From the sequence record NC_048668.1: 64,000 nucleotides of DNA; one strand, 5' to 3'. The position numbers were made by a program, and so were the translations under genes. Below the pieces are notes generated by a model. It saw nothing but the letters and a program-made list of their open reading frames with translations, was not told the DNA's origin and searched no databases. Positions 40,589 to 62,655 of the stretch are shown in pieces (the first letter of the stretch is position 1; each line of letters opens with the position of its first letter).

Positions 40589-40616
40589 CTCTCCTAGGGA
40601 TCATTCCCTAGGAGAG
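40589..40616 (+). terminator. Terminator hairpin
   Basis: CTCTCCTAGGGA / TCCCTAGGAGAG. Confidence 0.7.
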
Positions 40617-40627
40617 TCCTATTATAT

Positions 40628-40659
40628 CCATTTCCAATTTTTTTGGTGTCTATATAACC
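40628..40659 (+). repeat. 32-bp exact repeat copy A = early-promoter-like motif copy 5
   Basis: CCATTTCCAATTTTTTTGGTGTCTATATAACC, identical to 62496-62527. Confidence 0.9.
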
Positions 40660-40715
40660 AGCGCGAAGGTCTATAGTAAAGCCTTCTTTTCAAAACATTA
40701 CAAAAGGGAAAACTT

Positions 40716-41234
40716 ATGTTAAAGCGAGTAAAGTCCTATTTACTTGGGGTTATCAACAACTACCGAGTAGATAAGGCTATGAAGGAGGACATGGACGGGA
40801 GGGCGTGTTACGTGGTAGGTATCACGTTAGATCGTTTTTGGGAGGAGCCTGAGTTAAAGTTGTTTAATAAAATACATTTAGACGACTTAACCATGACCAT
40901 CAAAGATCTGTCTCCTGAGGAGATCGTAGATAAATCCATGTTTCTCTATAACCTATTCTCTAAAGCCTACCAAAGCAACTTTGTGAAGCTTCTGGCAATA
41001 GGTACTATCATCTACACTTTCCCGAAACAGTCACTTATTCTACTAATACTTTCAGCGTTGATTTCATTCTACATAATGCTGGTTAAGGAACGTAGATTGA
41101 TCACTATCGACTTAGTCATGAAACACGAGCATAAAGAGTTGGACGACCTAACTCGTCCAACTCTGGTTATGTGCTTTAAATCACTAGTCGTTCGGTTACT
41201 ACCTAAGATAAAGCGGAGGTTAAACATCAGTTAA
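40716..41234 (+). CDS. AT-rich hypothetical protein with hydrophobic segment
   Basis: AAAGGG RBS; directly behind the 32-bp repeat; many TTA/CTA/ATA codons. Confidence 0.65.
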   Translation: MLKRVKSYLLGVINNYRVDKAMKEDMDGRACYVVGITLDRFWEEPELKLFNKIHLDDLTMTIKDLSPEEIVDKSMFLYNLFSKAYQSNFVKLLAIGTIIYTFPKQSLILLILSALISFYIMLVKERRLITIDLVMKHEHKELDDLTRPTLVMCFKSLVVRLLPKIKRRLNIS

Positions 41235-41326
41235 ACCAACAAGGGGAGCTTAGGGAATCGGAAGTTTCTTAGGCTCTCCTCATAACAATACTTTATACCT
41301 AAAATTTTACAAATGGAGATCTAATA

Positions 41327-41647
41327 ATGAAAACAATCATTACCGTACTAACTACTGTTCTTATTGCAACTGTACCTTTCCTTCCTAAAGCGGAAGCAAG
41401 CAACGTCTACCATACCGACAAGGGCGTTACATTCACCATTGATGGTAAGTTAGCAGAAATCGAGCAGAATGGTAAAGTCACCAAGTGCGCTTTGGTAATC
41501 AGTAAAGATGCTACCTCTGCCTGGAAATGCAGCAACGGCAAGCAGCTCTGGATTCGTAACAAGCCGGAAAGTGAACTGATCACGTTCGCTATCTTCGATC
41601 AGAAAGACGACTACCCGGACTTCATTGATTCGGTTCTGAAGAAATAA
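41327..41647 (+). CDS. Secreted two-cysteine protein (member 2)
   Basis: Signal peptide ending AEA; KC...WKC. Confidence 0.7.
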   Translation: MKTIITVLTTVLIATVPFLPKAEASNVYHTDKGVTFTIDGKLAEIEQNGKVTKCALVISKDATSAWKCSNGKQLWIRNKPESELITFAIFDQKDDYPDFIDSVLKK

Positions 41648-41658
41648 CCAAAAAATAC

Positions 41659-41676
41659 GGAGGGGAAATCCCCTCC
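41659..41676 (+). terminator. Terminator hairpin
   Basis: GGAGGGG-AAAT-CCCCTCC. Confidence 0.7.
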
Positions 41677-41722
41677 TTTAATAACTAAATACAAACACTT
41701 TAAACTTAAAAAGGAAATAACA

Positions 41723-42175
41723 ATGAACCCGATCCAACACCTCAAGAAATTCGTTAAGTCAGACGTAGAAGGTCATGCTTTCATCGCGCTGTCTGATTCA
41801 CCTTTCCAGACCGCAATTGTAAAATGCATTCTTGGGAACGAATTCGGCGAAGCGTTTGAATTGGCCAAGGCTAATAAAAACTCATTCAAATTCTTCGAAA
41901 TAAAAGAACAGAAATATGCCGTAGTGGTGGCCAACGAATACGACTTCACAACCTACATGGACTTACCTGGACTAGTGAACCTGGAAACTGAACTGGGAAC
42001 TCGCGTAATCGTCTTTGGAGAGTATGCCCAAGGCGAAGTGCTGGGTAACCTGTTAATCGCTGTTGGGGCTTCCTGGTACGGTTTTACGGCGCCATGGAAA
42101 CATCACAACGATGCTCTCCATTATGTCACTTCCAGATATGCCGGTTGTGAAATGGCTCAGTGCAAAATTGCTTAA
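41723..42175 (+). CDS. Hypothetical protein
   Basis: AAGGA RBS; 150 aa. Confidence 0.7.
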   Translation: MNPIQHLKKFVKSDVEGHAFIALSDSPFQTAIVKCILGNEFGEAFELAKANKNSFKFFEIKEQKYAVVVANEYDFTTYMDLPGLVNLETELGTRVIVFGEYAQGEVLGNLLIAVGASWYGFTAPWKHHNDALHYVTSRYAGCEMAQCKIA

Positions 42176-42183
42176 CAAACTTT

Positions 42184-42206
42184 ACTAGGGGACATGTTCC
42201 CCTAGT
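42184..42206 (+). terminator. Terminator hairpin
   Basis: ACTAGGGGA / TCCCCTAGT. Confidence 0.65.
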
Positions 42207-42244
42207 TTATTCTCACTTGTCCCAATCTTAATTAGGAAAACCAA

Positions 42245-42604
42245 ATGAAACTCATCCACGCTATCTTCGCTATCGCTCTTCTGACTTTTGCTGGTTCTGC
42301 TTATGCTAACAACTATCGTCTGTACGATGACTACAGCAATGAGATTACTCTTCGCGGTAACCTGCTGAAAATTAAGAACGACGCACACGGCGGTGTTACT
42401 CGTTGTACCTTCAACGAAAACATCACGGGTAAAGAAAGTGATGGTACAACTTACCGTGGCGCTAACTACCTTTGTGGCGGTAAGATGTGGGCTACCTTCA
42501 CCACTAACCAAGAACGTCACACTGTAGAGGTTAGCGTCTTCCTGTACAAAGATACTCTCTACACCAAAGAACTGCCGCTGGCTGCTCTTGAACTCATCGA
42601 CTAA
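42245..42604 (+). CDS. Secreted two-cysteine protein (member 3)
   Basis: Signal peptide ending AYA; RC...YLC. Confidence 0.75.
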   Translation: MKLIHAIFAIALLTFAGSAYANNYRLYDDYSNEITLRGNLLKIKNDAHGGVTRCTFNENITGKESDGTTYRGANYLCGGKMWATFTTNQERHTVEVSVFLYKDTLYTKELPLAALELID

Positions 42605-42622
42605 TCAATAAGGCAATCTGAC

Positions 42623-42964
42623 ATGAACCGTTTTATCATCGTATTACTGGCTTTGATTTCTTTTAGCGCTTATGCTGACACCACGACCCTTAGTGAGGGA
42701 ACTGACTTTAATGCCGTGATCGGTGATAAAACCTCAGTCGTTAATTACGACGACCAGACCCTGTATTGTGAATTAGAGAAGACCAGCCGGGAACTCGATT
42801 CAGAATACGGCAAGTATCAACTGAAACTCTATAGCTGTGGCGCCAACATCATGTTCGCCCACAAGACCTACGACAGCCAACCTTTCACGCAAGCTATCAT
42901 CGGTGACAAGGCAACCAATGTAGTTTACTACAGCAACTACTTCAATAAGGAAACAACTAAATGA
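42623..42964 (+). CDS. Secreted two-cysteine protein (member 4)
   Basis: Signal peptide ending AYA; YC...GKY..KLYSC. Confidence 0.75.
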   Translation: MNRFIIVLLALISFSAYADTTTLSEGTDFNAVIGDKTSVVNYDDQTLYCELEKTSRELDSEYGKYQLKLYSCGANIMFAHKTYDSQPFTQAIIGDKATNVVYYSNYFNKETTK

Positions 42965-43326
42965 AATTCGTTATCGCGTTATTCGTAGCCGTACTGTCCC
43001 TGGCGTCTTTCTCTGCCAATGCAAGTCTGATCCATATGAGCGATGCACCTGAATACGATTTCGTAGTAGGTGACACTACTGCTCGGGTCAAAAACCTGCA
43101 AACCAATAAAACCTCTCGCTGTACGCTGATGTACAATGACAACGGTATCGATAAAGATAACCTAGTCTACGTCGTTAGCTTCTTCCAATGCGATGCAGGA
43201 TTCGAGCTGATGGCCAAGATCACAACCGAGAACGGCAACATCATCGTAGCCATGATTCGTAACGGTGCCAATAAAGAGTTCTATCGCAAGTACGCTCCTA
43301 AAGGTACTTGGGTTGTCATGAACTAA
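42961..43326 (+). CDS. Secreted two-cysteine protein (member 5)
   Basis: Signal peptide ending ANA; RC...FQC. Confidence 0.75.
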   Translation: MKFVIALFVAVLSLASFSANASLIHMSDAPEYDFVVGDTTARVKNLQTNKTSRCTLMYNDNGIDKDNLVYVVSFFQCDAGFELMAKITTENGNIIVAMIRNGANKEFYRKYAPKGTWVVMN

Positions 43327-43330
43327 ACCG

Positions 43331-43358
43331 ATCCCTCTACCTATCCGGGTAGGGGGAT
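43331..43358 (+). terminator. Terminator hairpin
   Basis: ATCCCTCTACC / GGTAGGGGGAT followed by TTATTTT. Confidence 0.65.
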
Positions 43359-43454
43359 TATTTTACGTATTACTCTTTTATTTTTTATGAACGCGAAACG
43401 TTTCTGAACTCCCCCGTTTCAGAAACCTCTTAATCTCCCGCTAAGGTGGTACAG

Positions 43455-44231
43455 ATGGGTCGTCAAAAAGCCGCGACAGTTAAACGTCGCGATGTTCGTA
43501 AAGCAAAAAGACAAAACAACCGTGGCATTGATAATCTGGTAGAGTTCCCGACTGCCGGTGGTCACGACGTTATCGGCATGGCTAAAGAGAAGCGCGATAC
43601 AAGCCCTCTGGAGCCACGTAACGATAACCAAGCGCAATACCTTAACGCTTTAGAACTAAGCAACATCGTCGTTTCTACGGGCTCCGCTGGTGCAGGTAAA
43701 ACCTATATCTGCGCTGCCTGGGCAGCTGATCGTCTTCTGGCAAAAGAGACTGATCGGATTATCGTAACGCGTCCTGTGTTGACTGCTGAAGAAGATCTGG
43801 GTTTCTTGCCCGGTGACATCTCCGAAAAATTCCGCCCGTTCTTCCGTCCAGTTTACGACGTGTTGCGTAAACGCCTGGGTAATAGCTTCCTCGAGTATTG
43901 CCTGAAACCGATGATCGAGAAAGTCGAGATTGCACCTTTCGCTTATATGCGTGGTCGTACATTCGATGATGCGGTTGTCATTCTGGACGAAGCTCAGAAC
44001 GTTACTGTCAACCAGATGCGTCTCTTCATTACGCGTATCGGCATGAACTCCACTGTAATTATCAATGGCGACATTGAGCAGTGCGATCTGCCAAACAAAA
44101 ACGATTCAGGTCTGCTTGATCTGATTCGTCGTATTGAAGAACGGGATATTGACATTCCCGTAATCAAGTTCGTTAAGGATGACTGCGTGCGTTCACCGAT
44201 CTGTCAGCTGGGTCTGGAGATTTATTCGTAA
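43455..44231 (+). CDS. phoH: PhoH-family ATPase
   Basis: MGRQKA start, G.AG.GKT, RIIVTRP, LGFLPGD..EKF, AYMRGRTF, ILDEAQN and GD..QCDL motifs. Confidence 0.95.
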   Translation: MGRQKAATVKRRDVRKAKRQNNRGIDNLVEFPTAGGHDVIGMAKEKRDTSPLEPRNDNQAQYLNALELSNIVVSTGSAGAGKTYICAAWAADRLLAKETDRIIVTRPVLTAEEDLGFLPGDISEKFRPFFRPVYDVLRKRLGNSFLEYCLKPMIEKVEIAPFAYMRGRTFDDAVVILDEAQNVTVNQMRLFITRIGMNSTVIINGDIEQCDLPNKNDSGLLDLIRRIEERDIDIPVIKFVKDDCVRSPICQLGLEIYS

Positions 44232-44237
44232 CCATTG

Positions 44238-44261
44238 GGTAGAGGGCTTCGGCTCTCTACC
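44238..44261 (+). terminator. Terminator hairpin (TTCG loop)
   Basis: GGTAGAGGGC-TTCG-GCTCTCTACC. Confidence 0.75.
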
Positions 44262-44300
44262 TTATTCGAATTCTTTTCAGAACTATATCACTTATTTGAA
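44261..44300 (+). promoter_or_regulatory. Early-promoter-like motif copy 6
   Basis: CTTATTCGAA-N12-CTATATCACTTATTTGAA. Confidence 0.6.
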
Positions 44301-44335
44301 TGAACATTTAATAAAACATATTGGAGTTTTTAAAG

Positions 44336-44452
44336 ATGGGTGATTTCTTGGACTTTATCATGGGTGCTATTCTTTGTTCTGCTGCTGCGGGGGAATTGGA
44401 CGAAGAAGAGGAAGAGCTGGAAGTTGAAGAAGTAGAGGATGAAGACGATTAA
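44336..44452 (+). CDS. Highly acidic 38-aa peptide (not in ORF track)
   Basis: GGAG RBS; MGDFLDFIMGAILCSAAAGELDEEEEELEVEEVEDEDD; lies between a promoter and a terminator. Confidence 0.6.
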   Translation: MGDFLDFIMGAILCSAAAGELDEEEEELEVEEVEDEDD

Positions 44453-44463
44453 GTTCGTTCTTC

Positions 44464-44483
44464 GGCAGGGGTAGTTCCCTGCC
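44464..44483 (+). terminator. Terminator hairpin
   Basis: GGCAGGG / CCCTGCC followed by a T tract. Confidence 0.7.
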
Positions 44484-44519
44484 CTCTATTTTTTGTTTTG
44501 TCTAATAAGGAGATTCGTT

Positions 44520-44804
44520 GTGCCCCGTTTACTTACGTTGATTGTTCCGATTTATGCTGCTGCACTTACTTATATTTTCTCAGTGATCTACAAAGACCTC
44601 AGTGAAGATACACTCATGGTTATTACTACGCTGGGTTTCTCCGGAGTAGTCGTTTGCATTATGCTTTATAGCTACGGTATCTTCCGTAGTACGAATCGCC
44701 TCAAGGCGTGGCTGGAGAAAGGGTACTTGGATTACCTGTCGATGATCCCAAGTATTTCATTCGCCGTTTCATTAACGATCCTTTTCTACATCATGGACAT
44801 TTAA
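44520..44804 (+). CDS. Membrane protein
   Basis: AAGGAG RBS, GTG start; three TM segments. Confidence 0.65.
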   Translation: MPRLLTLIVPIYAAALTYIFSVIYKDLSEDTLMVITTLGFSGVVVCIMLYSYGIFRSTNRLKAWLEKGYLDYLSMIPSISFAVSLTILFYIMDI

Positions 44805-44805
44805 A

Positions 44806-45135
44806 ATGATAGAGTATATTCGTTCTGAGAATTTCCTGTCTGGCTTTTACTTCGTTCTCTTCGTGGTGTCAACCTTCACGTTCATCGGGATTCGTCACTC
44901 TGAAGTCATTGGTCAGTTGACTAGAGCGACGACTTGGGTGTTGGTCGCAGCTGGTCTTATGACTATCTTTGGTTTTGTGGTTATCGCACCTATTACTAAA
45001 GACTGGAGTCATCTCGGCTTCCTGCCCTTCACTTCGTTCCTCGGTTACGTTGTAGCCAGGATCACTACGTCGATGGAGAACGAGAGAGTCGATAACAAGT
45101 CTAAACGACGGAGCATTCACCATGCTAAAGACTGA
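44806..45135 (+). CDS. Membrane protein
   Basis: Three TM segments. Confidence 0.65.
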   Translation: MIEYIRSENFLSGFYFVLFVVSTFTFIGIRHSEVIGQLTRATTWVLVAAGLMTIFGFVVIAPITKDWSHLGFLPFTSFLGYVVARITTSMENERVDNKSKRRSIHHAKD

Positions 45136-45421
45136 CCAAAAATACCCGCGTCGTGGCGGGGCGGTAGAGAACTTAATCTACCTCGTGCAATTCGTGGTGG
45201 TTGTCTTTGGGTACTTCCAGTTCTTGGTTGAGTCTGAAGACATTTACAACCAACTGGTCTTTATTTTCATTGCGTCGATTATCATTGAGAATCTGGCAGT
45301 ACTGTGGATTCTCCGTGCTAAGATCGTTACCTCGGTCACTAATGCAGTTATCTGGTGTGCATTGGGATCGGTACTGGGTTGCGTTATTACAGCCTGGTAC
45401 TTTGAGGTATTCACGCTTTAA
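45122..45421 (+). CDS. Membrane protein
   Basis: GGAG RBS; three TM segments. Confidence 0.65.
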   Translation: MLKTDQKYPRRGGAVENLIYLVQFVVVVFGYFQFLVESEDIYNQLVFIFIASIIIENLAVLWILRAKIVTSVTNAVIWCALGSVLGCVITAWYFEVFTL

Positions 45422-45433
45422 AGGAATCGCTAG

Positions 45434-46015
45434 ATGTCAAATCTTTACTTCTACTACGCTTCCATGAACTCAGGGAAATCGACCACGCTTATTCAGTCGG
45501 CTTACAACTACCGTGAACGCCGTATGCGTCCTCTGGTAATGAAGCCTGCAATCGATACGCGTGACTCTGAGCAAGAAGTCGTCAGTCGAATCGGCCTTCA
45601 CGTTGAAGCTGTCATCATCCGTGAAGAGATGGATCTTCCGAGCTATATCCGTAACGACATTTTGTTAAACGGAAAGCTGGATTGTATCCTGGTTGATGAG
45701 GCTCAATTCCTCACTGCTGCTCAAGTAAGTCAGTTAGCCTTCATTGTAGACGCTATGGATATCCCAGTGCTCTGCTATGGGCTGCGTAACGACTTCTGTG
45801 GCGAAGCGTTCCCTGGTTCTGCTCGACTGTTAGCAATGGCTGATAAGTTGGTAGAAATCAAATCGATCTGTTGGTGCGGTTCTAAATCTACTCACGTTCT
45901 CCGTTTGGATGGCGACGGTAAGGTTCTGCGTTCTGGCCCACAGGTTCAGATTGGGGGTAACGATAGCTACGTAGCTGTCTGCCGTAAACATTGGCGGGAG
46001 GGGAAATATGAGTAG
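45434..46015 (+). CDS. tdk: Thymidine kinase
   Basis: LYFYYASMNSGKST, ILVDEAQF, CYGLRNDF, C.CG.K and IGG..SY..VCR.H motifs. Confidence 0.95.
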   Translation: MSNLYFYYASMNSGKSTTLIQSAYNYRERRMRPLVMKPAIDTRDSEQEVVSRIGLHVEAVIIREEMDLPSYIRNDILLNGKLDCILVDEAQFLTAAQVSQLAFIVDAMDIPVLCYGLRNDFCGEAFPGSARLLAMADKLVEIKSICWCGSKSTHVLRLDGDGKVLRSGPQVQIGGNDSYVAVCRKHWREGKYE

Positions 46016-46256
46016 TGCGTGTAAGGTTGCCATTGCCGTTACACTGGCATGTTTGACGGTGTTAACTTTGGCACTCGCCGTTCCTAACTTTCACGATGTC
46101 GTTCCTTTCTGGATCGCACCTATCGCTTCGATCGTTTCTTTCATTGTAGCGGTCGGACTCTTCGTTAGTAAATACCGCGAGGTCAAATGGGCTATTATCG
46201 TCCAGTACGTTTCGCTGTACGTCTATATCGTGTCAGTTATCTGTATCAGTAACTAA
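46008..46256 (+). CDS. Membrane protein
   Basis: GGAGG RBS; three TM segments. Confidence 0.65.
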   Translation: MSSACKVAIAVTLACLTVLTLALAVPNFHDVVPFWIAPIASIVSFIVAVGLFVSKYREVKWAIIVQYVSLYVYIVSVICISN

Positions 46257-46260
46257 GCGT

Positions 46261-46284
46261 AGGGAGGGGTTAATTCCTCTCCCT
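46261..46284 (+). terminator. Terminator hairpin (TTAATT loop)
   Basis: AGGGAGGGG-TTAATT-CCTCTCCCT followed by TATTTTT. Confidence 0.75.
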
Positions 46285-46354
46285 TATTTTTAACCTAAAG
46301 GGAACGTATTATGAATAATGCGCATTTCTCCTGGCCTGATGAGTGGTACTGTTA

Positions 46355-46795
46355 ATGTCTGAACATTCGCGCGTAGTTAACGAAGATGGCACCATTACTA
46401 TCTTCGTAAGTAAGTTAGGTGTCCCGTCTAAAATCGACGGACGGATCTATAACGCTTCGGAAGAAGTAATCGATAAGTTCACTAAGGACAACATCGGTAA
46501 AGTCGTAGGTACGTTTGGGCACCCGGACATGACCGGCTTTGTCGACGTCGCCAATTACTTCAAACGACTCGAAGCAAAAGATCTGTTTAACAGCATCGGG
46601 ATCTTGGTAGACGCCAACCTTAAGGTAGACGAGCCGTATCTCGTAATCGAACCGAGCAAGCGCCTCAAAAAGATGGTTGACGATAACGTACCATTTGGGC
46701 TGGGTATACGCGCTATTGTGATCGCGCATTCTCTTGAGTCGAACAATGTTCTGACTATTGAAAAACTCATCGGCTACGATGTCGTCACTAAGTAA
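46355..46795 (+). CDS. Hypothetical protein resembling a prohead-protease domain (likely inactive)
   Basis: DGRIY, GTFGHP, Y.KRL and F.LGIR...GYD motifs. Confidence 0.6.
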   Translation: MSEHSRVVNEDGTITIFVSKLGVPSKIDGRIYNASEEVIDKFTKDNIGKVVGTFGHPDMTGFVDVANYFKRLEAKDLFNSIGILVDANLKVDEPYLVIEPSKRLKKMVDDNVPFGLGIRAIVIAHSLESNNVLTIEKLIGYDVVTK

Positions 46796-46805
46796 CTAAA
46801 AACAT

Positions 46806-46821
46806 GAGGGCTTCGGCCCTC
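46806..46821 (+). terminator. Terminator hairpin (TTCG loop)
   Basis: GAGGGC-TTCG-GCCCTC. Confidence 0.65.
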
Positions 46822-46845
46822 TATTATTTTTGTCAGGAGATCACC

Positions 46846-47397
46846 ATGGCTAACAAAACGAGAGAACAGCTGCTCGAAGAATTGAAAGTAGCAATTAACG
46901 CAAACGTCCAACATTGCTCCCGCATCGCAAAAACAAAAGAAGAAGCGGCCGTCATGGTCGCCGGGTCTATCCTCCGTATTCTGGACGGGGTAACTTCTTC
47001 TTTCCCTCACGCAGTTAACCTGGTGGCTAACGCGAACACGAAAGAGGATAAAGATTATCTTCGCTCAACTAACCGTGATTGGCTGAGTGAGGACACCGAC
47101 TTTACTCCGATGGATTATATCTATAAAACGATAACGATCGATTACCAGCCTGCAGATTTCTTCCCGTCTTTAGTTAAGCGCTATAAAGACATGGCTATGT
47201 CGCTTAATCTGGAAGACCCTACTATGACAGGTAGTCATTTGGTCTGGATGTTAGAAGAGCTGGCTTCTAATGAGGATCAGTCCGATACCAAGAAACATCG
47301 TTGGTTAGGTTACATCCAGGGCATCCTTATTGCGCACGGCGTAACTACCGTCGATAAAGAACGTAACTTTACTCGGAGGATCTTCAATGGTGCGTAA
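46846..47397 (+). CDS. Hypothetical protein (K.HRWLGYIQG.L C-terminal motif)
   Basis: AGGAG RBS before ATG 46846. Confidence 0.7.
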   Translation: MANKTREQLLEELKVAINANVQHCSRIAKTKEEAAVMVAGSILRILDGVTSSFPHAVNLVANANTKEDKDYLRSTNRDWLSEDTDFTPMDYIYKTITIDYQPADFFPSLVKRYKDMAMSLNLEDPTMTGSHLVWMLEELASNEDQSDTKKHRWLGYIQGILIAHGVTTVDKERNFTRRIFNGA

Positions 47398-47512
47398 GGT
47401 TTGGGAACGTCGATTAGAGATCATTATCGTTTTGGTCTTTGTTGTTTGTATCCCAGCCGCAGTGGTTGCGGCATTGATGTTCCTTCTGGAAATGAACGGT
47501 AGCCTTAAATGA
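47387..47512 (+). CDS. 41-aa single-TM peptide (not in ORF track)
   Basis: GGAGG RBS; hydrophobic core. Confidence 0.5.
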   Translation: MVRKVWERRLEIIIVLVFVVCIPAAVVAALMFLLEMNGSLK

Positions 47513-47634
47513 ATTCTAAAGAAAACTTCATTTCGTGGATTAACTCGATAGTAACCGCTGCGGTAATTGCGCTGCCGGTACTAATCTCGATGATCTTACT
47601 CCTTTACTTTTCTACTGGTGGGGAAGTCTACTGA
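47509..47634 (+). CDS. 41-aa single-TM peptide (not in ORF track)
   Basis: ATGA overlap at its start and TGATG overlap at its end. Confidence 0.5.
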   Translation: MNSKENFISWINSIVTAAVIALPVLISMILLLYFSTGGEVY

Positions 47635-48095
47635 TGTTCCTTGAAACGTATCGTGATATGTGGAGATCCTTCTATACTCGCTACCGTTACGAAGGGGCAA
47701 AAGGAAAGGTCTTTAAATTCGCCGTATCTGAAGACGTGGCCGATACCTTAGATAAACGCATGGCGGTAATATTCCTAAAAGAGCCTGGTCAAGAACCTAA
47801 GCTCCTTTGGGTCTATTACAACGAACCCATTTACCCTACAGTTTTCATCAGAGCGCTGAAGGCTGCGGGCGTTATTAAAGAGGGTATCGGTTACGAACAC
47901 GGCTGTGCCGCCAATCTCAGCGTGTCTAGACACTCTCGTAGCGATGTCTGGCAGATCTACACGGGTTCGCGGCCATTGTTGAAAGTAGGGTTGTTTAGCT
48001 CTACGTTCTACGCCAAAGCTATCGATCATGTCGGCTTCTTGGTAAATGACCATAAAGCCTTTCTCAAATTCTGTACTAATAAGGGTCTAAAATGA
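47634..48095 (+). CDS. Hypothetical protein
   Basis: Translationally coupled ORF, 153 aa. Confidence 0.7.
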   Translation: MFLETYRDMWRSFYTRYRYEGAKGKVFKFAVSEDVADTLDKRMAVIFLKEPGQEPKLLWVYYNEPIYPTVFIRALKAAGVIKEGIGYEHGCAANLSVSRHSRSDVWQIYTGSRPLLKVGLFSSTFYAKAIDHVGFLVNDHKAFLKFCTNKGLK

Positions 48096-49162
48096 GCATT
48101 GCTACATTAGAGAAATATAAAAAAGGTTTCCATGAATCTAAGCGCTTTACTCCTTGGATGGTTAACTTTGCCGAGGGTTTCATCGACCTATTCCTCGTAG
48201 CAGATGGGGAGTACTCTTATTTGTTGAGTAGTCGTTTTACGTTACACGAGCTGAGTGGTCACATCTCCGACCAACCTGCGTTACTCGCAGCGGTCACGGC
48301 CATATGGCAGTCAAATCCTAATCTGGTTCGCGTCGTACTGCGCGTTTGTGATCTTTTACAAAACGGTCATCAACTCGACGTACTAGAAGAGATCGATCCA
48401 AGTAAGGTTAAGTACGACCAGATGTCGGACGTAACCTATTACGAAGGTTACGATATCGTTAAACAGGGTGATGAGTGGCTGGCGGTCTATCGTTCGAGAG
48501 TCCATCCTAGCGATACTTACAGCACCTGGCAAAGTTTCGGGGAACGTACTCCGGTTAAGTTCCCATACGACCCGCTGGATGAAGCGGAGAAGACTTACTA
48601 CACGACCCCGTATATCTCTCTTCCGTCGGGCGGTGAGGAACTGGAGTATACGGCTATTCCTAAAGGGACGGATGTTGATCTTTGGTTAGCTGAACAGGCA
48701 ACTAAGTACTACTACGGCGTTAAGTATACCGAATATGGCAGTACTGTCTGTTTCCTTACTGCGGAGCAAGTAACTGCAGTTGCTGAATTGTGGGTAGGTA
48801 AACTCTCCACTGATGCGTTGGTTAAATCGTTAGAAGCAAAAGATCCGATGCTAGCTCACCAGATCTTACAGCTCTACGGCATGATCTATATTCCGTCTAT
48901 CCATCTCCCGCCGCTCTACGTAGGTCATGTGCATACTCACCTGCCGGGTATCATGTCACCTGCGCCTAAGTACGACAGTTTTGTACTGGCTGTCGATCCG
49001 GATAAGGTTCCAGCCTTCCTGGATAAAATGGGTACGCGTTACGAGGCGTTCTTTGCTCGTGACGAAAAAGGAAACTACCAACCTGCTAAAGTCAAGCATC
49101 TCAAAATGACTGAGGTTGACATCGGTAGCCTGAAGTTGAAGACCTTCCCTTCTAAACTTTAA
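48092..49162 (+). CDS. Hypothetical protein
   Basis: ATGA overlap; 356 aa. Confidence 0.75.
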   Translation: MSIATLEKYKKGFHESKRFTPWMVNFAEGFIDLFLVADGEYSYLLSSRFTLHELSGHISDQPALLAAVTAIWQSNPNLVRVVLRVCDLLQNGHQLDVLEEIDPSKVKYDQMSDVTYYEGYDIVKQGDEWLAVYRSRVHPSDTYSTWQSFGERTPVKFPYDPLDEAEKTYYTTPYISLPSGGEELEYTAIPKGTDVDLWLAEQATKYYYGVKYTEYGSTVCFLTAEQVTAVAELWVGKLSTDALVKSLEAKDPMLAHQILQLYGMIYIPSIHLPPLYVGHVHTHLPGIMSPAPKYDSFVLAVDPDKVPAFLDKMGTRYEAFFARDEKGNYQPAKVKHLKMTEVDIGSLKLKTFPSKL

Positions 49163-49170
49163 AACATAGA

Positions 49171-49192
49171 CGAGTAGGGGAAACCCTACTCG
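49171..49192 (+). terminator. Terminator hairpin (GAAA loop)
   Basis: CGAGTAGGG-GAAA-CCCTACTCG followed by CTTTT. Confidence 0.75.
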
Positions 49193-54000: not shown

Positions 54001-54018
54001 TTTTGCTTTTTTGATGAC

Positions 54019-55290: not shown

Positions 55291-55322
55291 GGTAGTCTCT
55301 AGTCCTTGGATACGGATAAAAA

Positions 55323-55338
55323 GGCCGGTAAACCGGCC
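55323..55338 (-). terminator. Terminator hairpin
   Basis: GGCCGG / CCGGCC followed by T5 on the minus strand. Confidence 0.65.
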
Positions 55339-55343
55339 ATTTG

Positions 55344-57522
55344 TTAAATTTGCCTCATATAGATACTGTTGATCCGATGAGCCATGTTCATTGGTGCCCG
55401 AGTGATGTCAATCATGAACGCTGCATGGGACGCCCAGTCAGGAATCGCAGTAAAGGAAAGCGGTTGTCCGTCGTAACCTTGGATGTTAAGCGGAGTCTCG
55501 TAAGTCTTGATAGAGGACCCTGGTCCGTTCAACTGAAGGTCGTAACCGCCACCAACTACCGACTTGTAAACGATAGGTGAACGCTCATCATCTGGGCCGA
55601 AGAACTCGGCTGCCATGTAGACTACGCGAATACTAATCGTACCAGAAGATGCCCAGCTACTTAGGTTGACACGAGCGATTACCGGACCGTTACCTTTGAG
55701 AGGCATAGAACCGATATAGAGTTGATACGTCCCGTCTTTAGGTACAGTGTTGGTACCTACCTGCATGTAACCGTTAAGGCGCTGGATGGAGAAGTTAGTA
55801 GACCCGGCAGTACCCCAGCCCACTCGGTTCTTACGAATCTCACAACCCGTACCGCCCGGAGATGGGATCCAAACTTCGTGTGCGTAGTGAGACACATCGC
55901 TAAAGATCTCTGAACGGATGTAGTTCTCTTCAGGGACTTCAGGTTGAATCGAGGTCAATGCCAACGGCGGGCCGTTATGCGGCAACTTACTATCGCGGAA
56001 GGTAACTGTACCTTTACCCGATACCCAACCAGTAATTGCAGGGTCGTCGTTACTAATACCCAGGTTACTGAAGTAGCATTTATCGAACGACATCACACAG
56101 CGATCACCTGCAAAGAAGACGTTACTCTTAGCCTTCGTATTGGATGCGCGGAAAATGAAGTTAACGCCGTTGAACACGATATTGGCATTGAGTCCGTCTT
56201 TCACTTCGAAAGCATACTCGTAAGGACCCTCGCCTTCGAACCATCCATCATTAAAGATCAAACGAGCCGAACCACTGTCTACTAAGACGTAACGTTTGTA
56301 CGCATAGTCGAAAGAACAGTTGTCAAAGATCGTGTGTGCTTTGTTAACGTTGATGAAGTAATTCGACTGGGAGAAGATACAGGAGATGAAGTGGATCTGT
56401 TCCCCGGAGTTAGTCATTGTAGCATTGTTGGTGTAGCAGATGTTACAATGGTTGAACTGGTAGTTGAAGAACTTGACGTAGTACGTATTGGAGCTATAGG
56501 TAAACCCAGTGGAGAACAGATCGCAACCGCCACCCATAAAGCACATGGAGTTCTGTGCCCAGAAATAAGCGAAGGTGTCGTTCATTCCCATGAAGTGTAC
56601 GTACTTATCCATCCCAGGGCCGACCGCACGGAGATTACGACACTCCATGGTACCTTGGGTATAACCTCGCAAGTTAACCCAGCTAATGCCGTATACAGGC
56701 GCTGCTGCAGTGCCTGGGGTCATCAGGGTAAAGTCGAGGATGGCTCCAGAGAAATCGTAATCGATTGTCTTGGTCTGAAGCGTAATCGTAGTCTTGATAA
56801 AGTACCGACCAGGATTACATTCCATCTTAATGTTACCGTTAATCGAACGAGTCGTATCGTTAGTAAACGGAACAGTCTCAGACCACTTGGACATCCGGGT
56901 AAATGCAGGGCCAGAGTCGATGCTGTTGTCGTTAGGCGCAGCGCCCCAGAACGTAGGGTTGATTACACCAGCGTTATCAAATACACGTTTCCAGCGACTG
57001 CCATCTGTGGCAACAATAGTTGCACCGCCGTCATCGGTAGAAGTTTTGTCCGCCTTAATAAAGGCAAACTTACCGCCACCGATACCTGAACCTGCACGAT
57101 AACTTTTAACTTCAATAACTTCGTTATCCGAAAATAGGTTTAGTAGTACGGAGATCAGAGACGCTCTCAACCGTACGTAATACTTTGGCGTACTGGAGTG
57201 CTTCGTTGGTGATGAGGCGTTTAATCTTACCCTGTTCGTTCAGAGTAGCTACTGCGCCAGCATCGTTACGAGTATATTCGTTAACGTAGAAGTGACGGCT
57301 ATCTTCGTAGGTAAAGAAAATATCGCCGACTTTAGTTGCTGCGATCCCTTTCTCAAGAGAATCAAACGCGGAATGATAATCAAGTTGTTTACGCAGATCG
57401 TTCAAGTCCAATACTGCGGTTTCCAATACACCTTGTTCATTCACCGTGTTGAATGGGAAATAGTCGTTTTCTTTTGGTGTAGACGACGAAGGTAATTGAG
57501 ATATCTTTTGGCCATTAATCAT
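55344..57522 (-). CDS. Tailspike/depolymerase-like protein, about 725 aa, +1 frameshift at 57131-57134
   Basis: ORF 57124..57522 (anchor domain) and ORF 55344..57170 join as ESVSDLRTTKPISDNEVIEVKSY, colinear with KTIAALRNRVPTLEGEPVYVISY of the 627 gene. Confidence 0.75.
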
Positions 57523-57550
57523 GAGATAACCTTATCTGTATTTGGTCAAT

Positions 57551-57556
57551 TCATAG
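57551..57556 (-). promoter_or_regulatory. Late-promoter-like CTATGA site
   Basis: Minus-strand TTCCTATGAA, 34 nt before ATG 57522 and just after a terminator. Confidence 0.5.
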
Positions 57557-57566
57557 GAAGTTGCAT

Positions 57567-57596
57567 AATAGAGTGGAGGTAATCCCCCACTCTATT
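57567..57596 (-). terminator. Terminator hairpin
   Basis: AATAGAGTGGAGG / CCCCCACTCTATT. Confidence 0.65.
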
Positions 57597-57598
57597 TA

Positions 57599-59665
57599 TT
57601 ACGCCATAACTAGTTTAGACCATTTAGCCGCAGCGCCTACTCCGGCAGTATTACAAATCCACATGGAGTCCGTAGCGGTTCCGTCGTATGCGATTGCTAC
57701 CTGTCCCTTACGTACTGTTCCGGAAATTTCTGACGGGGATGTTTTAACGGATATCACGTTAGGTGACTGAACGTGGATACCCATTACGAAGTTACTCGGT
57801 TGTGATGGGACGGATACTGTTCCTAGGATAGTGTTCCCAAGTACTGTACAGTTGCCGTTACCCAAGGTCACATCTCCGAGAACGTGACAACCGAGTAGTG
57901 TTATTCGCTGACTGTTCGCGTCTCCTGTTACGCTTCCTTGAATTACCGTATTTACCATCCTTATCCCCGATGCAGACTGTAGTATAGAACCACTACCGGC
58001 CACGATGTCAACATTACCTAAAACCAAGCAATTAGTTATTGCAACCTGACCTGATACAACCGGGAGTCTAAGGCTAGCAAATTGGGTATTTACGAATCGG
58101 AAATCGGTTTCAATGGATCCGGTGAAATAGGCATCGCCAATAAATGAGTTGGTGATGTTAAGTCTTACTTTACCTTTAGCCGATGGGTTAATCAGACTTA
58201 TACCGCCGCTAAAACGAGGACAATCATTAATCTGGACGTTAGCGTACGGACCTAATGCGACCGATTGACTGAAGTTACTAATGCCGCATTGAGTAAACCA
58301 AACTTCACCTTGTACTTGAGCAAACGTACCGGTAGGTAGAGAACCGGTCATCCCACTTCCGCGCCCAGGTCTCTCTGAGTGTAAGTTGGTAAAGTGTATC
58401 TGAATACCCCCATCTACCTTAAGGAACGGCGTGCAGTTATTGAGTTCGAAACTACCGCCATACCAGCTCAGGAAGTTAGAGGCATCTCCCTGTCTTGAGG
58501 AAGTGACCCATACTGGAGGGAACGCTTGGTTGGCCGGGTCGCCGATATCGACGTAACTCATATAGTCTTTACCGTCGTTTAAACGACCAGAAGCAAAGAC
58601 ACCGACGCGGTTAAAGGTATTGTCAAAGGCGTTGTCGAGATAAAGGCCGGATCCTCTAAAGTTCTGGATGACTACGTCTTCCCAAAGAGAGCCTGTGGTT
58701 CGACATTTAACTCCGTGACAAAAGGCGAATCCTACCTCGTCACCTGGGTTCGCTATCTTTGTAGATATCCCCTCGACGCATAACCTACATAGAGTCAGTG
58801 AGTTAAACTTGAACTCAGAACCCCAATTATCAATCGCTCCGACGTTGTCCCATCCGTTAGCTAGCGCTGTCGAACGAGGAATATTGAACGATAGCACCGT
58901 ACCGTTGTCCGGAGCTGAGCCTGCGCCTTCCAGGAACCAACTACATTTAGCTCCCTTATTAAAGTATGGTAGAATGACGGGCTTGGTAAGGACGATCTTC
59001 ATGGCAGGTAAAAATACCTTTCCAGCATTACTGGTGAACTTAGTACGGTATTTGATTAGTCCGTCAAATGCATCATCCCAGCTATTACTCTCACTTTTGA
59101 ACCAGACCAGTTCCATATTGCCGTCTTCAATAACTCGAGACAATCGGACACCTGAGTTAGTGACTAGATTAACACCGCCGTCATCTTCTGTAGTTTTATC
59201 GGTTAAGTCTACAATGAACGTTCCGCGGTTATAGACCCTGGCGTTAAGTTCAATCGTTAACTCTACCTTCTGCTTATCCCTCAGATTCTTCAAACCCTTG
59301 ATGTCACTGAACGAAGATACCTGGATAGGCTGACTTATTTGGAAACGGTTGGTGGTGTAAAGAATAGGTGCGTTATTTTCGTCGACGTAGACGACTGACC
59401 CAGAACCCACTTTTCGGTACCTTAGCGCTAACTCTTTACGATTCTCATCAGTGTAGACAAAGAAGTCCTCATTAACAATGGTCTTAGACATCCCTTCTTC
59501 AATGGTGCTAAACGCATTAGAAAGATCGAGTACCTCTCTCAAAGTACCGATAGAAACTTTACCGGTCTCATTACCAGCCGAATCTACCGTAGGAAATACC
59601 GATCCTTCCGATAGAGTATCTTTATTTGGTAAATTAGATATTTTAATTGGGTCGCTAAAAGACAT
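57599..59665 (-). CDS. Tailspike/depolymerase-like protein, 688 aa
   Basis: KISNLP anchor, NAFSTIEEG..FFVYTD and DDGG module shared with paralogues; beta-helix body. Confidence 0.75.
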   Translation of the reverse strand: MSFSDPIKISNLPNKDTLSEGSVFPTVDSAGNETGKVSIGTLREVLDLSNAFSTIEEGMSKTIVNEDFFVYTDENRKELALRYRKVGSGSVVYVDENNAPILYTTNRFQISQPIQVSSFSDIKGLKNLRDKQKVELTIELNARVYNRGTFIVDLTDKTTEDDGGVNLVTNSGVRLSRVIEDGNMELVWFKSESNSWDDAFDGLIKYRTKFTSNAGKVFLPAMKIVLTKPVILPYFNKGAKCSWFLEGAGSAPDNGTVLSFNIPRSTALANGWDNVGAIDNWGSEFKFNSLTLCRLCVEGISTKIANPGDEVGFAFCHGVKCRTTGSLWEDVVIQNFRGSGLYLDNAFDNTFNRVGVFASGRLNDGKDYMSYVDIGDPANQAFPPVWVTSSRQGDASNFLSWYGGSFELNNCTPFLKVDGGIQIHFTNLHSERPGRGSGMTGSLPTGTFAQVQGEVWFTQCGISNFSQSVALGPYANVQINDCPRFSGGISLINPSAKGKVRLNITNSFIGDAYFTGSIETDFRFVNTQFASLRLPVVSGQVAITNCLVLGNVDIVAGSGSILQSASGIRMVNTVIQGSVTGDANSQRITLLGCHVLGDVTLGNGNCTVLGNTILGTVSVPSQPSNFVMGIHVQSPNVISVKTSPSEISGTVRKGQVAIAYDGTATDSMWICNTAGVGAAAKWSKLVMA

Positions 59666-59674
59666 CGAATACCT

Positions 59675-60215
59675 CTATTGACTTTTGAATGGGTTGAATT
59701 GAACCGCTAACTGATACGTATCGAAATTCTCGGTCTTCAACTTCCAACCCAAGTAGATTTTGATACGTTTACCTTTAATGAAGCTAGGACCCATGTAATA
59801 GATCATCCAGTAGTGGTCTTTGTATATTCCTGTCTGATTGTTCCAAGCCGGACCTTTTACAGTCGGTTTGACTGAAGACTTAGGTGCGCCCAAGAACCGG
59901 ATACTGAAGTTATAGAGCGGGTTCCGATAAAGCCAAAGGACTCGGCAAATGTACTGCGCTGTTTTTGGCGGTAGGTTCTTTCTCCAGAGCGTATGCTCTG
60001 TCTTCCAGCCGTTATCGCCATCCAAATCGTTTATCTGGCATCATGAACCAATCGAGCCATTTAGGAAGACGTGCATCCTTAGTTGCAAAGATTGGGAGGA
60101 ATGGCGTCACTACTGCGGCAACTGCCAAAGTCAGTAGGTAAACAACCAACAACAAACACCAATGGATAAATCCCTTCAAGGGAACAGGTGTACTGAACAC
60201 CGTAATTGTTTTCAT
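59675..60215 (-). CDS. Membrane-anchored phage protein, about 179 aa, +1 frameshift at 60030-60032
   Basis: Removing one A gives LPKWLDWFMMPDNDLDGDNGW...WLYRNPLYNF, a phage motif family usually found beside tail-fibre genes. Confidence 0.7.
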
Positions 60216-60238
60216 CTTGAGTCACTCTAGGTTAAAGG

Positions 60239-60278
60239 TCATATCAAACTTAATTTACGCCTATATCACAATTATGAA
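60239..60278 (+). promoter_or_regulatory. Early-promoter-like motif copy 8, overlapping a divergent minus-strand TATGA
   Basis: TCATATCAAA-N12-CTATATCACAATTATGAA. Confidence 0.55.
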
Positions 60279-60307
60279 TAGGATAAATTAATCTGAGGGC
60301 TTTGTGC

Positions 60308-60829
60308 ATGAACATTGAAAACTTCAAGAAAGACTTTGCTGAAATCGCTGACAAATTCAAAGTGATGTACGGTCACTTCAATCCAGAGAAGACTCGTCCA
60401 GATCTGGATATCAACAACGGTGACTGTGGCGTATTCGCACTGACTGTCGGTGCAGTACTCCAGAACAAAGGTTACAGTATCCAGTACGTAGATAACCTCA
60501 ACCATGGCTTCATTCGTCTTTACGACGTCGATGAAGACCTCTGCTTCGACAGCAACAACTACGAAGGTTGTTCCACTGCCGACATGAACGAGCGTTGGAG
60601 TTCGGATGAAATCAATCCGCTTGACTACAACGGCATGTGCGATGCGTTTGTCCCTTACGATGTTAAGGGTGCGTACATGATCAAAACTATCCTGGATCAT
60701 TACTCGGTCCCATTGCCAGAGTATATCCAGAACGTACTCAAAGAAGAACTCGAATACGAGATCACCGAGTACGTTGAGAAATACCAAGCGTTCATGGCTC
60801 GGTCTATCGAAGAACTGAACGCAGCGTAA
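60308..60829 (+). CDS. Hypothetical early protein (INNGDCGVFA motif)
   Basis: GAGG RBS; strong codon bias. Confidence 0.75.
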   Translation: MNIENFKKDFAEIADKFKVMYGHFNPEKTRPDLDINNGDCGVFALTVGAVLQNKGYSIQYVDNLNHGFIRLYDVDEDLCFDSNNYEGCSTADMNERWSSDEINPLDYNGMCDAFVPYDVKGAYMIKTILDHYSVPLPEYIQNVLKEELEYEITEYVEKYQAFMARSIEELNAA

Positions 60830-60920
60830 CCCTGAGCAATTCCGCTCGACACCCCGGCCGTAGATCTCACAGGTCAATAGCGACACTCGTAGAGGCTACG
60901 GTTTTTAGGAGAGTAGTACG

Positions 60921-61787
60921 ATGAAAACAACTGTAAAAGTATTAATGAAAAATGTCTATCTGGTCACCTTCGATCTGTTCGAGGCCAGTAAAATGATGAA
61001 CATGTCCTACTCGGATATGCAATCGTTATTCTGCCAACTCCGTAACATGAACGTCGGTAAAGATGACATGTATGGCCGGGTTATTAATAACCACCAACGT
61101 GCTCAGTACAACGGCCATGACCACTACGACTTCACTTGCTCACCGGACTTCATAATCCGGACAAGTGGTATTCGCATGGATAGCGAAGAGGCTATTGTCT
61201 CTATCAAGTTGGAAGTGCTCAACGAAGACATGTTCCCTACCTCTGCTGCTGAATTCGCTACCTACTTTAATGAGTACGGTTGGCGCTTCGTACCACGTTG
61301 CTTCTGCGTGAACTACGAAGTCGAGGATGCTAAGTTTGAAAACCCAATTCGCTCTTACGTCGGTCAGCCTAAAGAACTGACCAAAGGCTGGGTTAGGGAC
61401 GAAAGCGTCAACTATAGAACTATCGACATTTGGATTGATGACGAAACTGGTACTGAGCTTGGCGAGAATCCAGAGGAAGATATCGGCGTGTCGGATTCCG
61501 ATGAACGTAACCCGGTAATCATCGTCAATCAGGCTCATTCTGAAATCATCAAAATGATGCTCTGCTCAGGTTACAATTTCTCTACTGTCATCGACGGTAA
61601 AGAAGTTCATTTCGAAATCACCGGACCTAAGGACAATTCAAATAATCCTTACGCAGCTAAGTTGGATGAGCACTGTAAAGATCTGAAAGGTTCCTTCAAA
61701 CAGAAGGAAGGTTATAACGGCGCAACTTTTACGCCGGAGCAACCTGGTTGCGAGTATGATAACCAGCTTATGTGGGGGCCAGAATAA
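60921..61787 (+). CDS. Hypothetical protein
   Basis: AGGAG RBS; 288 aa. Confidence 0.75.
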   Translation: MKTTVKVLMKNVYLVTFDLFEASKMMNMSYSDMQSLFCQLRNMNVGKDDMYGRVINNHQRAQYNGHDHYDFTCSPDFIIRTSGIRMDSEEAIVSIKLEVLNEDMFPTSAAEFATYFNEYGWRFVPRCFCVNYEVEDAKFENPIRSYVGQPKELTKGWVRDESVNYRTIDIWIDDETGTELGENPEEDIGVSDSDERNPVIIVNQAHSEIIKMMLCSGYNFSTVIDGKEVHFEITGPKDNSNNPYAAKLDEHCKDLKGSFKQKEGYNGATFTPEQPGCEYDNQLMWGPE

Positions 61788-61797
61788 AAGAGGGTGT

Positions 61798-62224
61798 ATG
61801 GAAAAAGAAACCAAGAAAGAGAAGCGACCGGCAACGGTGCGGGAGGTTATTGAGAATATCCTCGAACTCCAGCCTTCCATTGATCCGAAGTATCTGAAAG
61901 GGTTCCATACCTTATCGGAACCCACGGATGACAACGGGAGGGTTTGTCGTGAATTCCTTCGCTGGTAAACTCGCAATTGAAGGATCTTTCTTAGCCGATG
62001 AATTAGAGCTATCGGTGAGGGAACAAGATCATCACTTCGAAGAATACCGTAGACATAATGCTGATGTTAACGTTCTGGCTAACCGCCAACGGGAAATAAT
62101 GCATTTACACGGTATTGCTGAATGTCTGGATCGTGGGGTATTGGCTGAGGAAATAGCCTACTACCTGGACGCTCCAGTATCAGAGATCGAAGAGAAGATT
62201 GAGAAGATCAAGTCGTTTAAGTAA
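61798..62224 (+). CDS. Hypothetical protein, about 141 aa, probable +1 frameshift near 61936-61945; C-terminal HTH-like segment
   Basis: ATG 61798 (GAGG RBS) stops at 61968; the +1 frame is ORF 61928..62224. Confidence 0.5.
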
Positions 62225-62231
62225 ATAAATG

Positions 62232-62253
62232 AGGTAGGGTTAATTCCCTACCT
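62232..62253 (+). terminator. Terminator hairpin (TTAATT loop)
   Basis: AGGTAGGG-TTAATT-CCCTACCT followed by TTATT. Confidence 0.75.
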
Positions 62254-62285
62254 TTATTCTGTCTTATCATAAAGGGTAATTGTAA

Positions 62286-62447
62286 ATGCATATTTTAATT
62301 CTGTTGGTTCTCTGGGTTATCGGCTCTTATGTTGTTGCTAATCGTGCGCAGTCTAAGGGCGGTAATTTCAAAACGTGATTCTGGATCTCTATGATCTTCG
62401 ATCCACTCGGTGGCTACGTGATCTATAAGCTCCTGTTACGCAAATAA
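62286..62447 (+). pseudogene. 53-codon membrane peptide with in-frame TGA at 62376-62378
   Basis: MHILILLVLWVIGSYVVANRAQSKGGNFKT*FWISMIFDPLGGYVIYKLLLRK. Confidence 0.55.
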
Positions 62448-62457
62448 ACATAACACT

Positions 62458-62487
62458 CCCTCAGTAGACCTAATGGTCTACTGAGGG
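62458..62487 (+). terminator. Terminator hairpin
   Basis: CCCTCAGTAGACC-TAAT-GGTCTACTGAGGG. Confidence 0.7.
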
Positions 62488-62495
62488 GATTGTAC

Positions 62496-62527
62496 CCATT
62501 TCCAATTTTTTTGGTGTCTATATAACC
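62496..62527 (+). repeat. 32-bp exact repeat copy B = early-promoter-like motif copy 9
   Basis: Identical to 40628-40659. Confidence 0.9.
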
Positions 62528-62655
62528 GTGGCGCAAGGGTAGAAGTAATACCTTTGTTAAAATCACAAACCTGCCTCTAAAGGGGAAATACTGTAATCAG
62601 ATAGAAACCATATACTCCTATTGAAGTACTTAACCAGTTTTGACTTACGGACTAC

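Follow-up and report, generated by a model that had tools for sequence, protein, structure and literature searches.

A 32-bp repeat of Serratia phage vB_SmaM_2050HW as a predicted phiKZ-type early promoter, present in two copies and set in a conserved hairpin-promoter-hairpin cassette

The longest exact direct repeat in the 276,025-bp genome of Serratia phage vB_SmaM_2050HW (NC_048668.1; hereafter 2050HW), a jumbo phage of the genus Moabitevirus, is a 32-mer, CCATTTCCAATTTTTTTGGTGTCTATATAACC, that occurs twice on the + strand of the 64,000-nucleotide stretch of DNA analysed here. This stretch, referred to as the window, matches bases 124001-188000 of the + strand of the genome at 100% identity, and positions given below are those of the window unless the genome is named. 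An original prediction, made from the letters alone, had taken the repeat for a promoter set in terminator-promoter-hairpin cassettes of a phiKZ-like phage and had proposed that these cassettes shuffle accessory early genes in the manner of the promoter-early-stem-loop (PeSL) elements of T4-type phages. Judged from sequence comparison, the repeat appears to be a duplicated phiKZ-type early promoter inside a conserved hairpin-promoter-hairpin cassette. We think it probable that the 32-mer represents a complete early promoter of a phiKZ-like jumbo phage, situated in paralogous cassettes that undergo occasional conversion and exchange.

Results

A duplicated 32-mer and a family of 25 predicted early promoters

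The two copies lie 21.9 kb apart, exactly where the original prediction had located them:

Site 1, 40628-40659, + strand: 32-mer copy 1, with ATTTCCA at 40630-40636, a T-tract and the core TATATAAC at 40651-40658.
Site 2, 62496-62527, + strand: 32-mer copy 2, a full predicted early promoter with the core TATATAAC at 62519-62526.

A third match was absent from the window even when three mismatches were allowed, and 100 shuffles produced none. A search of the genome for TATAT[A/T]AC revealed that the two copies belong to a wider family. Scanning 2050HW with a weight matrix returned exactly 25 sites clearly above background, all of them on the + strand and none on the - strand. The family consensus reads gATTTCnA, about 7 nt, aTTTcAnGTc, TATATTAC, 5 nt, TGAatAGg, in which the core is TATAT[T/A/C]AC and the T-rich spacer that precedes it ends in (C)AnGT, giving aTTTcAnGTc-TATAT[T/A/C]AC. 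From upstream element to core, all of this is contained in the 32-mer, which is therefore a full-length promoter of the family. A G located 14 nt past the first core base is invariant in the 17 seed sites and, from this conservation, is likely to be the transcription start. At 23 of the 25 sites an open reading frame (ORF) with a Shine-Dalgarno sequence begins 26-123 nt past this predicted start, and one site directly precedes the gene for the beta subunit of RNA polymerase (RNAP; phrog_3295, E = 5e-238).

For comparative purposes we used the relatives Kodama, Yaphecito, Moabite, Haymo, BUCT660 and Pectobacterium phage ParM-25, which are 96-99.9% identical to 2050HW, together with the more distant Totoro (about 80-83% identity). 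Promoters were counted in Moabite, Kodama, ParM-25 and Yaphecito as the set of close relatives, each of which has 25 sites, and in Totoro as the distant relative, which has 28.

Early promoters have been predicted in phiKZ (TATATTAC), in 201phi2-1 (TTTRARR_BTATATTACDWHDGTG) and in OBP and N1M2 (TTTCARRYAKATATTAT) (PMC7058600 Table 2), and the promoter core found here is the published phiKZ early core. Jumbo phages with their own RNA polymerases all have an AT-rich motif at about -10 of early genes, which is read by the virion polymerase, and transcription in phiKZ-type phages is independent of the host polymerase (PMC7598289); phiKZ itself has about 28-32 copies of its early promoter (PMC8244752). 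The 25 sites of 2050HW agree with this pattern in having an AT-rich core with a T-rich/TTTCA upstream element, in standing at operon heads in the orientation of the operon, and in numbering a few dozen per genome. The phage moreover encodes multisubunit RNA polymerases of its own: a beta-like gene matches PF00562 above the curated cut-off and a beta'-like gene matches PF00623 weakly, the matches being ones that do not distinguish virion from non-virion polymerase gene sets. In gene content as in promoter core, 2050HW thus bears out the phiKZ-like assignment made in the original prediction and appears to be a nucleus-forming-type jumbo phage with split RNAP beta and beta' genes. No description of an early promoter family of Moabitevirus was found in the literature searched.

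Four related cassettes

Four members of the family form a subfamily. TCTATATAACC has four occurrences in the genome, each of them on the + strand, at window positions 40649, 62517 and 63438 and at genome position 213823, and the corresponding cores begin at 40651 (site 1), 62519 (site 2), 63440 (site 3) and genome 213825 (site 4). Compared at non-consensus columns, these four TATATAACC sites resemble one another more closely than any others of the 25, and they account for the three most similar of the 300 possible promoter pairs; all four have in common TCTATATAACC and a 5'-terminal leader hairpin. Each is syntenic in five relatives including Totoro, and the arrangement is therefore old and stable. 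Sites 2 and 3 lie 921 bp apart and flank gp238. The third element, placed at 63439 in the original prediction, is real:

Site 3, 63418-63448, + strand: predicted early promoter of the same subfamily, GATTTCCA, then TTTTCAAGTC, then TATATAAC at 63440-63447.

The terminator-promoter-hairpin layout was also found and proved to be common across the 25-member family, in which many promoters are preceded by a strong hairpin and many predicted transcripts open with one. The hairpins around the three sites of the window are as follows:

Site 1 upstream hairpin, 40588-40617, + strand: terminator-like, with a 13-bp stem and the tail CCTATTATAT; closes the operon ending with gp197.
Site 1 start and leader hairpin, 40665-40686, + strand: predicted start G at 40665, where GAAGG(U)CU-AUAGUAA-AGCCUUC begins.
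Site 2 upstream hairpin, 62458-62487, + strand: 13-14-bp stem without a + strand T-run.
Site 2 start and leader hairpin, 62533-62557, + strand: predicted start G at 62533; GCAAGGGUA-GAAGUAA-UACCUUUGU.
Two hairpins between gp238 and site 3, 63357-63405, + strand: GGCCCGUG...CGGGCC at 63357-63379 and CCUUUUC...GAAAAGG at 63385-63405.
Site 3 start and leader hairpin, 63454-63473, + strand: predicted start G at 63454; CCAGA-GUAA-UCUGG at 63460-63473.

The upstream hairpins of sites 1 and 2 have fold energies of about -28 kcal/mol each. Both had been called terminators in the original prediction, and that of site 1 is flagged as terminator-like. Pairing in these hairpins is conserved: at site 1 two pairs are altered on both sides in Totoro with pairing retained, at site 2 three pairs covary on both sides in the same phage, and the hairpins at 63357-63405 include one covarying pair.

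Possible exchange of genes beside the promoters

PeSLs of T4-type phages are sigma-70 promoters with stem-loops, pairs of which bound indels and can form mini-circles (PMC2839356, PMC4122927). If the cassettes of 2050HW were true analogues, recombination between intragenomic copies would excise and insert promoter-flanked cassettes, possibly via mini-circles, and so drive the shuffling of early accessory genes. The composite hairpin-promoter-hairpin layout, and the position of gp238 between two subfamily promoters, are in keeping with such a mechanism. Whole-genome comparison of 2050HW with the four close relatives yielded 29 indel or replacement events, six of which have a breakpoint between a promoter and the first start codon. 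These six are located at four promoters, namely promoter 65121 (+1114 bp in Kodama), site 1 (sequence replaced in Moabite, 394 bp deleted in ParM-25), site 4 (+930 bp in Moabite) and promoter 258877 (differing inserts in Kodama and Moabite). Further events are seen in Totoro at three of these places, site 1, site 4 (an extra 46-codon ORF) and 258877. Across seven genomes, polymorphism affects 4 of the 25 stretches from promoter to first gene, two of them in the subfamily. The inserted genes are of no known family or encode a helix-turn-helix protein. Homing endonucleases were considered as a cause of the promoter-adjacent inserts and rejected, as the inserted ORFs match no endonuclease family.

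A junction between the sequences of two sites does map to the element at site 4 of Moabite, which consists of its own upstream promoter half and a site 2-type leader followed by Moabite-only DNA; the junction falls inside an 18-mer, GTCTATATAACCGTGGCG, that is common to sites 2 and 4. Recombination of the copies with one another in order to move cassettes is nonetheless not supported. None of the 29 events is bounded by two promoter copies, the inserts have no promoter of their own, every close relative has its 25 promoters at syntenic positions, and the sigma-70 promoter that defines a PeSL is absent. Public sequencing runs were also searched, and the phage was present in DNA runs but in no RNA run. 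A 'goes back' joint in the DNA runs turned out to be a contig bounded by both copies rather than a circle; contigs break at the 32/39-mer, over the site 1 region, only because the sequence is repeated there. Whether the genes between copies vary had been put forward as a check; gene content does vary across relatives directly behind some promoters, whereas gp238 and the 21.9-kb interval between the exact copies are retained in every relative. We therefore regard true PeSL analogues as unlikely. The proposal of PeSL-like shuffling is partly supported in another form, in that the variable first genes and the Moabite junction give a modest hint, from genome comparison, that promoter-leader modules may act as exchange boundaries.

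The 930-bp insert of Moabite (L031:4634-5563) contains only short ORFs of 80 and 90 aa without family matches and ends with a hairpin pair resembling that before site 3, and the gene downstream of it starts with GTG instead of ATG. A search of the phage collection for the source of this insert matched Moabite records only. Short intergenic motifs, CTCTC..ATTTTTTACGT and (T)AAAAAATAAAAGAG, recur elsewhere in the genome (genome 258633, 262143 and about 217080), with an example of the AAAAAATAAAAGAG-type repeat inside the window at 43372. They may mark additional middle or late classes of promoter, and some indel breakpoints adjoin them.

Identity of the two copies

An alignment of the site 1 and site 2 intergenic regions extends over about 170 nt, with strong divergence outside the promoter. 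Both copies read GGCA in Totoro and GGTG in all other genomes compared, and the two Totoro copies, at loci 24 kb apart, are again identical across the 32 nt. The same double change at two distant loci suggests gene conversion, and thus points to concerted evolution of the copies. Conversion would not be needed if purifying selection alone acted on a constrained promoter, perhaps including an operator, and if the variation nearby were the ordinary mosaicism of gene boundaries. Such an account agrees with the restriction of the 32-mer to promoter positions and the divergence of the flanking cassette sequence; most indels in the genus, moreover, lie at other gene boundaries, and the enrichment of breakpoints near promoters is marginal. 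It is harder to reconcile with the other members of the family, in which about half of the 32 positions vary freely, or with the Totoro double substitution, which is difficult to obtain in both copies without conversion or a co-evolving factor, and the Moabite junction is direct evidence that exchange within the element can occur. Selection as the sole force is in our view quite improbable.

Within the 32-mer, CCAATTTTTTTGG (40634-40646 and 62502-62514) forms a small inverted repeat, CCAA-N5-TTGG, that is kept in Totoro and absent from the other 23 promoters. It could be an operator particular to the two 32-mer promoters. A scan of JGI metagenomes with the 32-mer gave no match, adding neither relatives nor donors, and the 11 matches to GTCTATATAACCNNNGCG in IMG/VR were set aside as unrelated, all of them being without promoter context. 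Outside the window, at genome positions 81919 and 212471, lies the second-longest exact repeat, AAAGAAAGGGCATTGCGCCCTTTCTTTTTTT (31 bp), a palindrome that forms a terminator-like hairpin flanked by A and T runs.

Hairpins at the 5' ends of the leaders

Over their first 40 nt, the 25 leaders are more strongly folded than random genome windows (mean z -1.70 versus -0.29; Mann-Whitney p = 7e-6), and the hairpins begin 0-6 nt from the predicted 5' end. The stems foreseen at the two 32-mer copies, GAAGG...CCTTC at 40665-40686 and CAAGGGTA-GAAGTAA-TACCTTTG at 62534-62556, were recovered, as was CCAGA-GTAA-TCTGG at 63460-63473. The site 1 hairpin folds at -6.1 kcal/mol and has one pair that covaries in Totoro. 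That of site 2 (-9.8 kcal/mol, z -3.5) persists in Totoro, where a G.U pair has become A-U and a bulge is present, and at site 3 the Totoro stem is CUAGA/UCUAG, a compensatory change. Stem-loops at the 5' terminus are known to stabilise bacterial and phage mRNAs, as in the ompA 5' untranslated region (UTR), and the leader hairpin of the 2050HW promoters is probably a protective cap against 5'-end-dependent RNA decay.

The hairpins might instead be regulatory, either as attenuators or as sites at which a phage RNA-binding protein co-regulates the four subfamily transcripts through the (GA)AGUAA loop. T-runs follow the hairpins of sites 1 and 3, the latter being flagged as terminator-like, and sites 2 and 4 have the same loop, GAAGUAA, which Totoro retains. 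The T-runs, however, are lost in Totoro and have no counterpart at sites 2 and 4, and this lack of conservation argues against an attenuator. The Totoro loop is GAUAGAAA at site 1 and GUAG at site 3, which makes a specific role of the AGUAA loop doubtful, and 5' hairpins of unrelated sequence are general to all 25 leaders. A regulatory function of this kind therefore strikes us as decidedly unlikely. An Rfam search of the window gave no family at the gathering score and only noise around sites 2 and 3.

The polymerase expected to read the promoters

That the sites are host sigma-70 promoters, read by Serratia RNA polymerase right after infection as in T4-type PeSLs, is very improbable: the TATA-rich box and T-rich upstream region are suggestive, and the main-class TATATT agrees with TATAAT at 5/6 positions, but a consensus scan flags none of copy 1, copy 2 and site 3, no -10 hexamer that can be read in TATATAAC ends in T, ATTTCnA is poor as a -35 element, and the motif is that of phiKZ-type early promoters, whose phages are reported to be independent of the host polymerase. 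Transcription from phiKZ-type early promoters is resistant to rifampicin in the first minutes of infection and starts about 10 nt past the core centre.

First genes behind the promoters and other features of the window

The genes and leader behind the three sites of the window are the following:

gp198, 40716-41234, + strand: first gene behind site 1; 172-aa predicted membrane protein of no known family, GC 39.5%.
Remainder of the gp238 5' UTR, 62558-62730, + strand: start-less AAAGGGGAAA, then three conserved hairpins just before the AGGAG ribosome-binding site (RBS).
gp238, 62731-63330, + strand: sole gene between sites 2 and 3; 199-aa predicted membrane protein of no known family, GC 37.5%.
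gp239, 63506-63841, + strand: first gene behind site 3; small predicted membrane protein of 111 aa.

At three of the four subfamily sites, then, the first gene encodes a small predicted membrane protein. The AT-rich composition ascribed to these genes holds for gp198 and gp238 against a genome GC of 46.8%, but not for gp239 (47.0%). gp239 gave a weak match to DUF4870, below the curated cut-off. gp198 and gp238 were compared as possible paralogues; BLASTP found nothing and a profile comparison gave E = 0.0014 at 17% probability, which remains a hint.

gp198 exists as two alleles with 38% amino-acid identity, one carried by 2050HW, Kodama and Yaphecito and the other by Moabite, Haymo and BUCT660, a distribution that cuts across species labels. 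The left boundary of the allele swap lies inside the site 1 leader. The 5' part of the gene is deleted (394-395 bp) in ParM-25 and two other public runs, public sequencing runs beyond the genomes compared show this deletion or a replacement in four cases, and the gene is absent from Totoro.

The 5' UTR of gp238 is about 197 nt long and strongly folded (minimum free energy -61.3 kcal/mol, z -4.4). Its 110 nt proximal to the start codon, in which the three hairpins end at AGGAG, are near-invariant in Totoro, whose genome is ~80% identical overall. The leader is single-copy by sequence and without an Rfam match, and a scan of IMG/VR with the site 2 leader gave no match; it may be a regulatory RNA element. 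The AAAGGGGAAA motif behind copy 2, which had been read as the RBS of the following gene, cannot serve as such, as no start codon follows it in 6/6 genomes and gp238 starts at 62731 behind its own AGGAG. Upstream of site 2, the small ORF at 62286-62378 has an annotated length of 30 aa in 2050HW; its counterparts in Moabite and Kodama are annotated with 53 aa and reach to just short of the site 2 hairpin. A frameshift in 2050HW is possible.

In Kodama and Moabite, a 2.1-kb minus-strand tailspike/depolymerase stretch (gp232 region, 57579-59682) is replaced by about 36 bp. The two phages have a different tailspike arrangement, a swap of a host-range module that is unrelated to the promoters.

Discussion

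Our preferred interpretation is that the 32-mer is an early promoter most likely read by the virion-packaged multisubunit RNA polymerase of the phage, and that each of the 25 promoters would head one early transcription unit. The subfamily would consist of paralogous intergenic cassettes at four sites, each opening with a stable hairpin at which the upstream unit terminates and continuing through the promoter and a 5'-terminal hairpin to the first gene. Selection on the promoter would keep the two copies identical, probably aided by occasional gene conversion between the loci, and as a side effect the conserved promoter-leader may provide a homology arm through which first genes are exchanged or gained among related phages.

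Several considerations weigh against this interpretation. We infer the hairpin role and conversion as well as the reading polymerase, the start site and the timing, the last three by analogy with phiKZ-type phages. Sites 1 and 3 of Totoro do not keep the AGUAA loop motif. The concerted change seen in that phage comprises only two adjacent positions in one genome, and selection for a lineage-specific, co-evolving contact could be an alternative source of it. Enrichment of breakpoints near promoters is weak, with p = 0.013 against random gene junctions and p = 0.055 against a uniform distribution over non-coding DNA, and loss in Totoro is no more frequent among the first genes of 2050HW than among other genes (1/23 versus 7.4%).

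For the jumbo phages of Moabitevirus, the analysis provides a 25-site map of early promoters and of their predicted starts, which helps to define early genes; most of these have no function assigned to them and are candidate host-takeover or anti-defence genes. The concerted change in Totoro and the junction in Moabite are the two observations most worth attention. If conversion and promoter-linked exchange are true, regulatory cassettes would guide mosaicism in phiKZ-like phages as they do in T4-like phages, which would be of use in understanding and engineering the placement of new genes in phiKZ-like phages. A broader conjecture, which we advance only tentatively, is that promoter-leader modules for virion polymerases in nucleus-forming jumbo phages serve as portable recombination linkers, PeSL-like in effect and arisen independently of sigma-70 promoters. 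On this view gene conversion would homogenise copies 22 kb apart, and the promoter-proximal position would be favoured as a landing site at which accessory genes without a known family are gained, traded among lineages and expressed at once.

Comparison with known systems

The cassettes of 2050HW resemble the PeSLs of T4-type phages in combining early promoter and stem-loop in modules between small genes without known family; some differences between close relatives abut the module, and one two-site junction lies inside it. The stem-loop or terminator component is present, in the strong upstream hairpins, the leader hairpins and their covariation. PeSLs, however, are strong sigma-70 promoters, whereas the scan flags 0/3 of the window sites, whose -10 candidates do not end in T. 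An exchange event in PeSLs has an element at either end and alters how many elements there are; in the 2050HW group their number and positions are constant, and no event has a promoter copy at both ends.

In the morons of lambdoid phages, a gene carries its own promoter and terminator. Accessory genes are likewise placed between existing transcription signals in the 2050HW group, but the inserts bring no promoter and use the resident phage promoter upstream. The leader hairpins resemble stabilising 5' stem-loops of the ompA type in their position near the predicted 5' end, their occurrence throughout the family and their compensatory conservation; the host degradosome may have different access to the transcripts of a phage that builds a nucleus-like compartment.

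The closest likeness is to phiKZ-type early promoters, with which the 2050HW family shares an 8-mer core with a choice of T, A or C at position 6, a TTTCA-type element immediately upstream of the core, a conserved downstream G at equal offset, and about 25-32 copies per genome, all oriented along early operons of a phage with split RNAP beta/beta' genes. To this plan 2050HW adds the upstream ATTTCnA element, a four-member subfamily with common leader sequence, and two copies that are identical over 32 nt.

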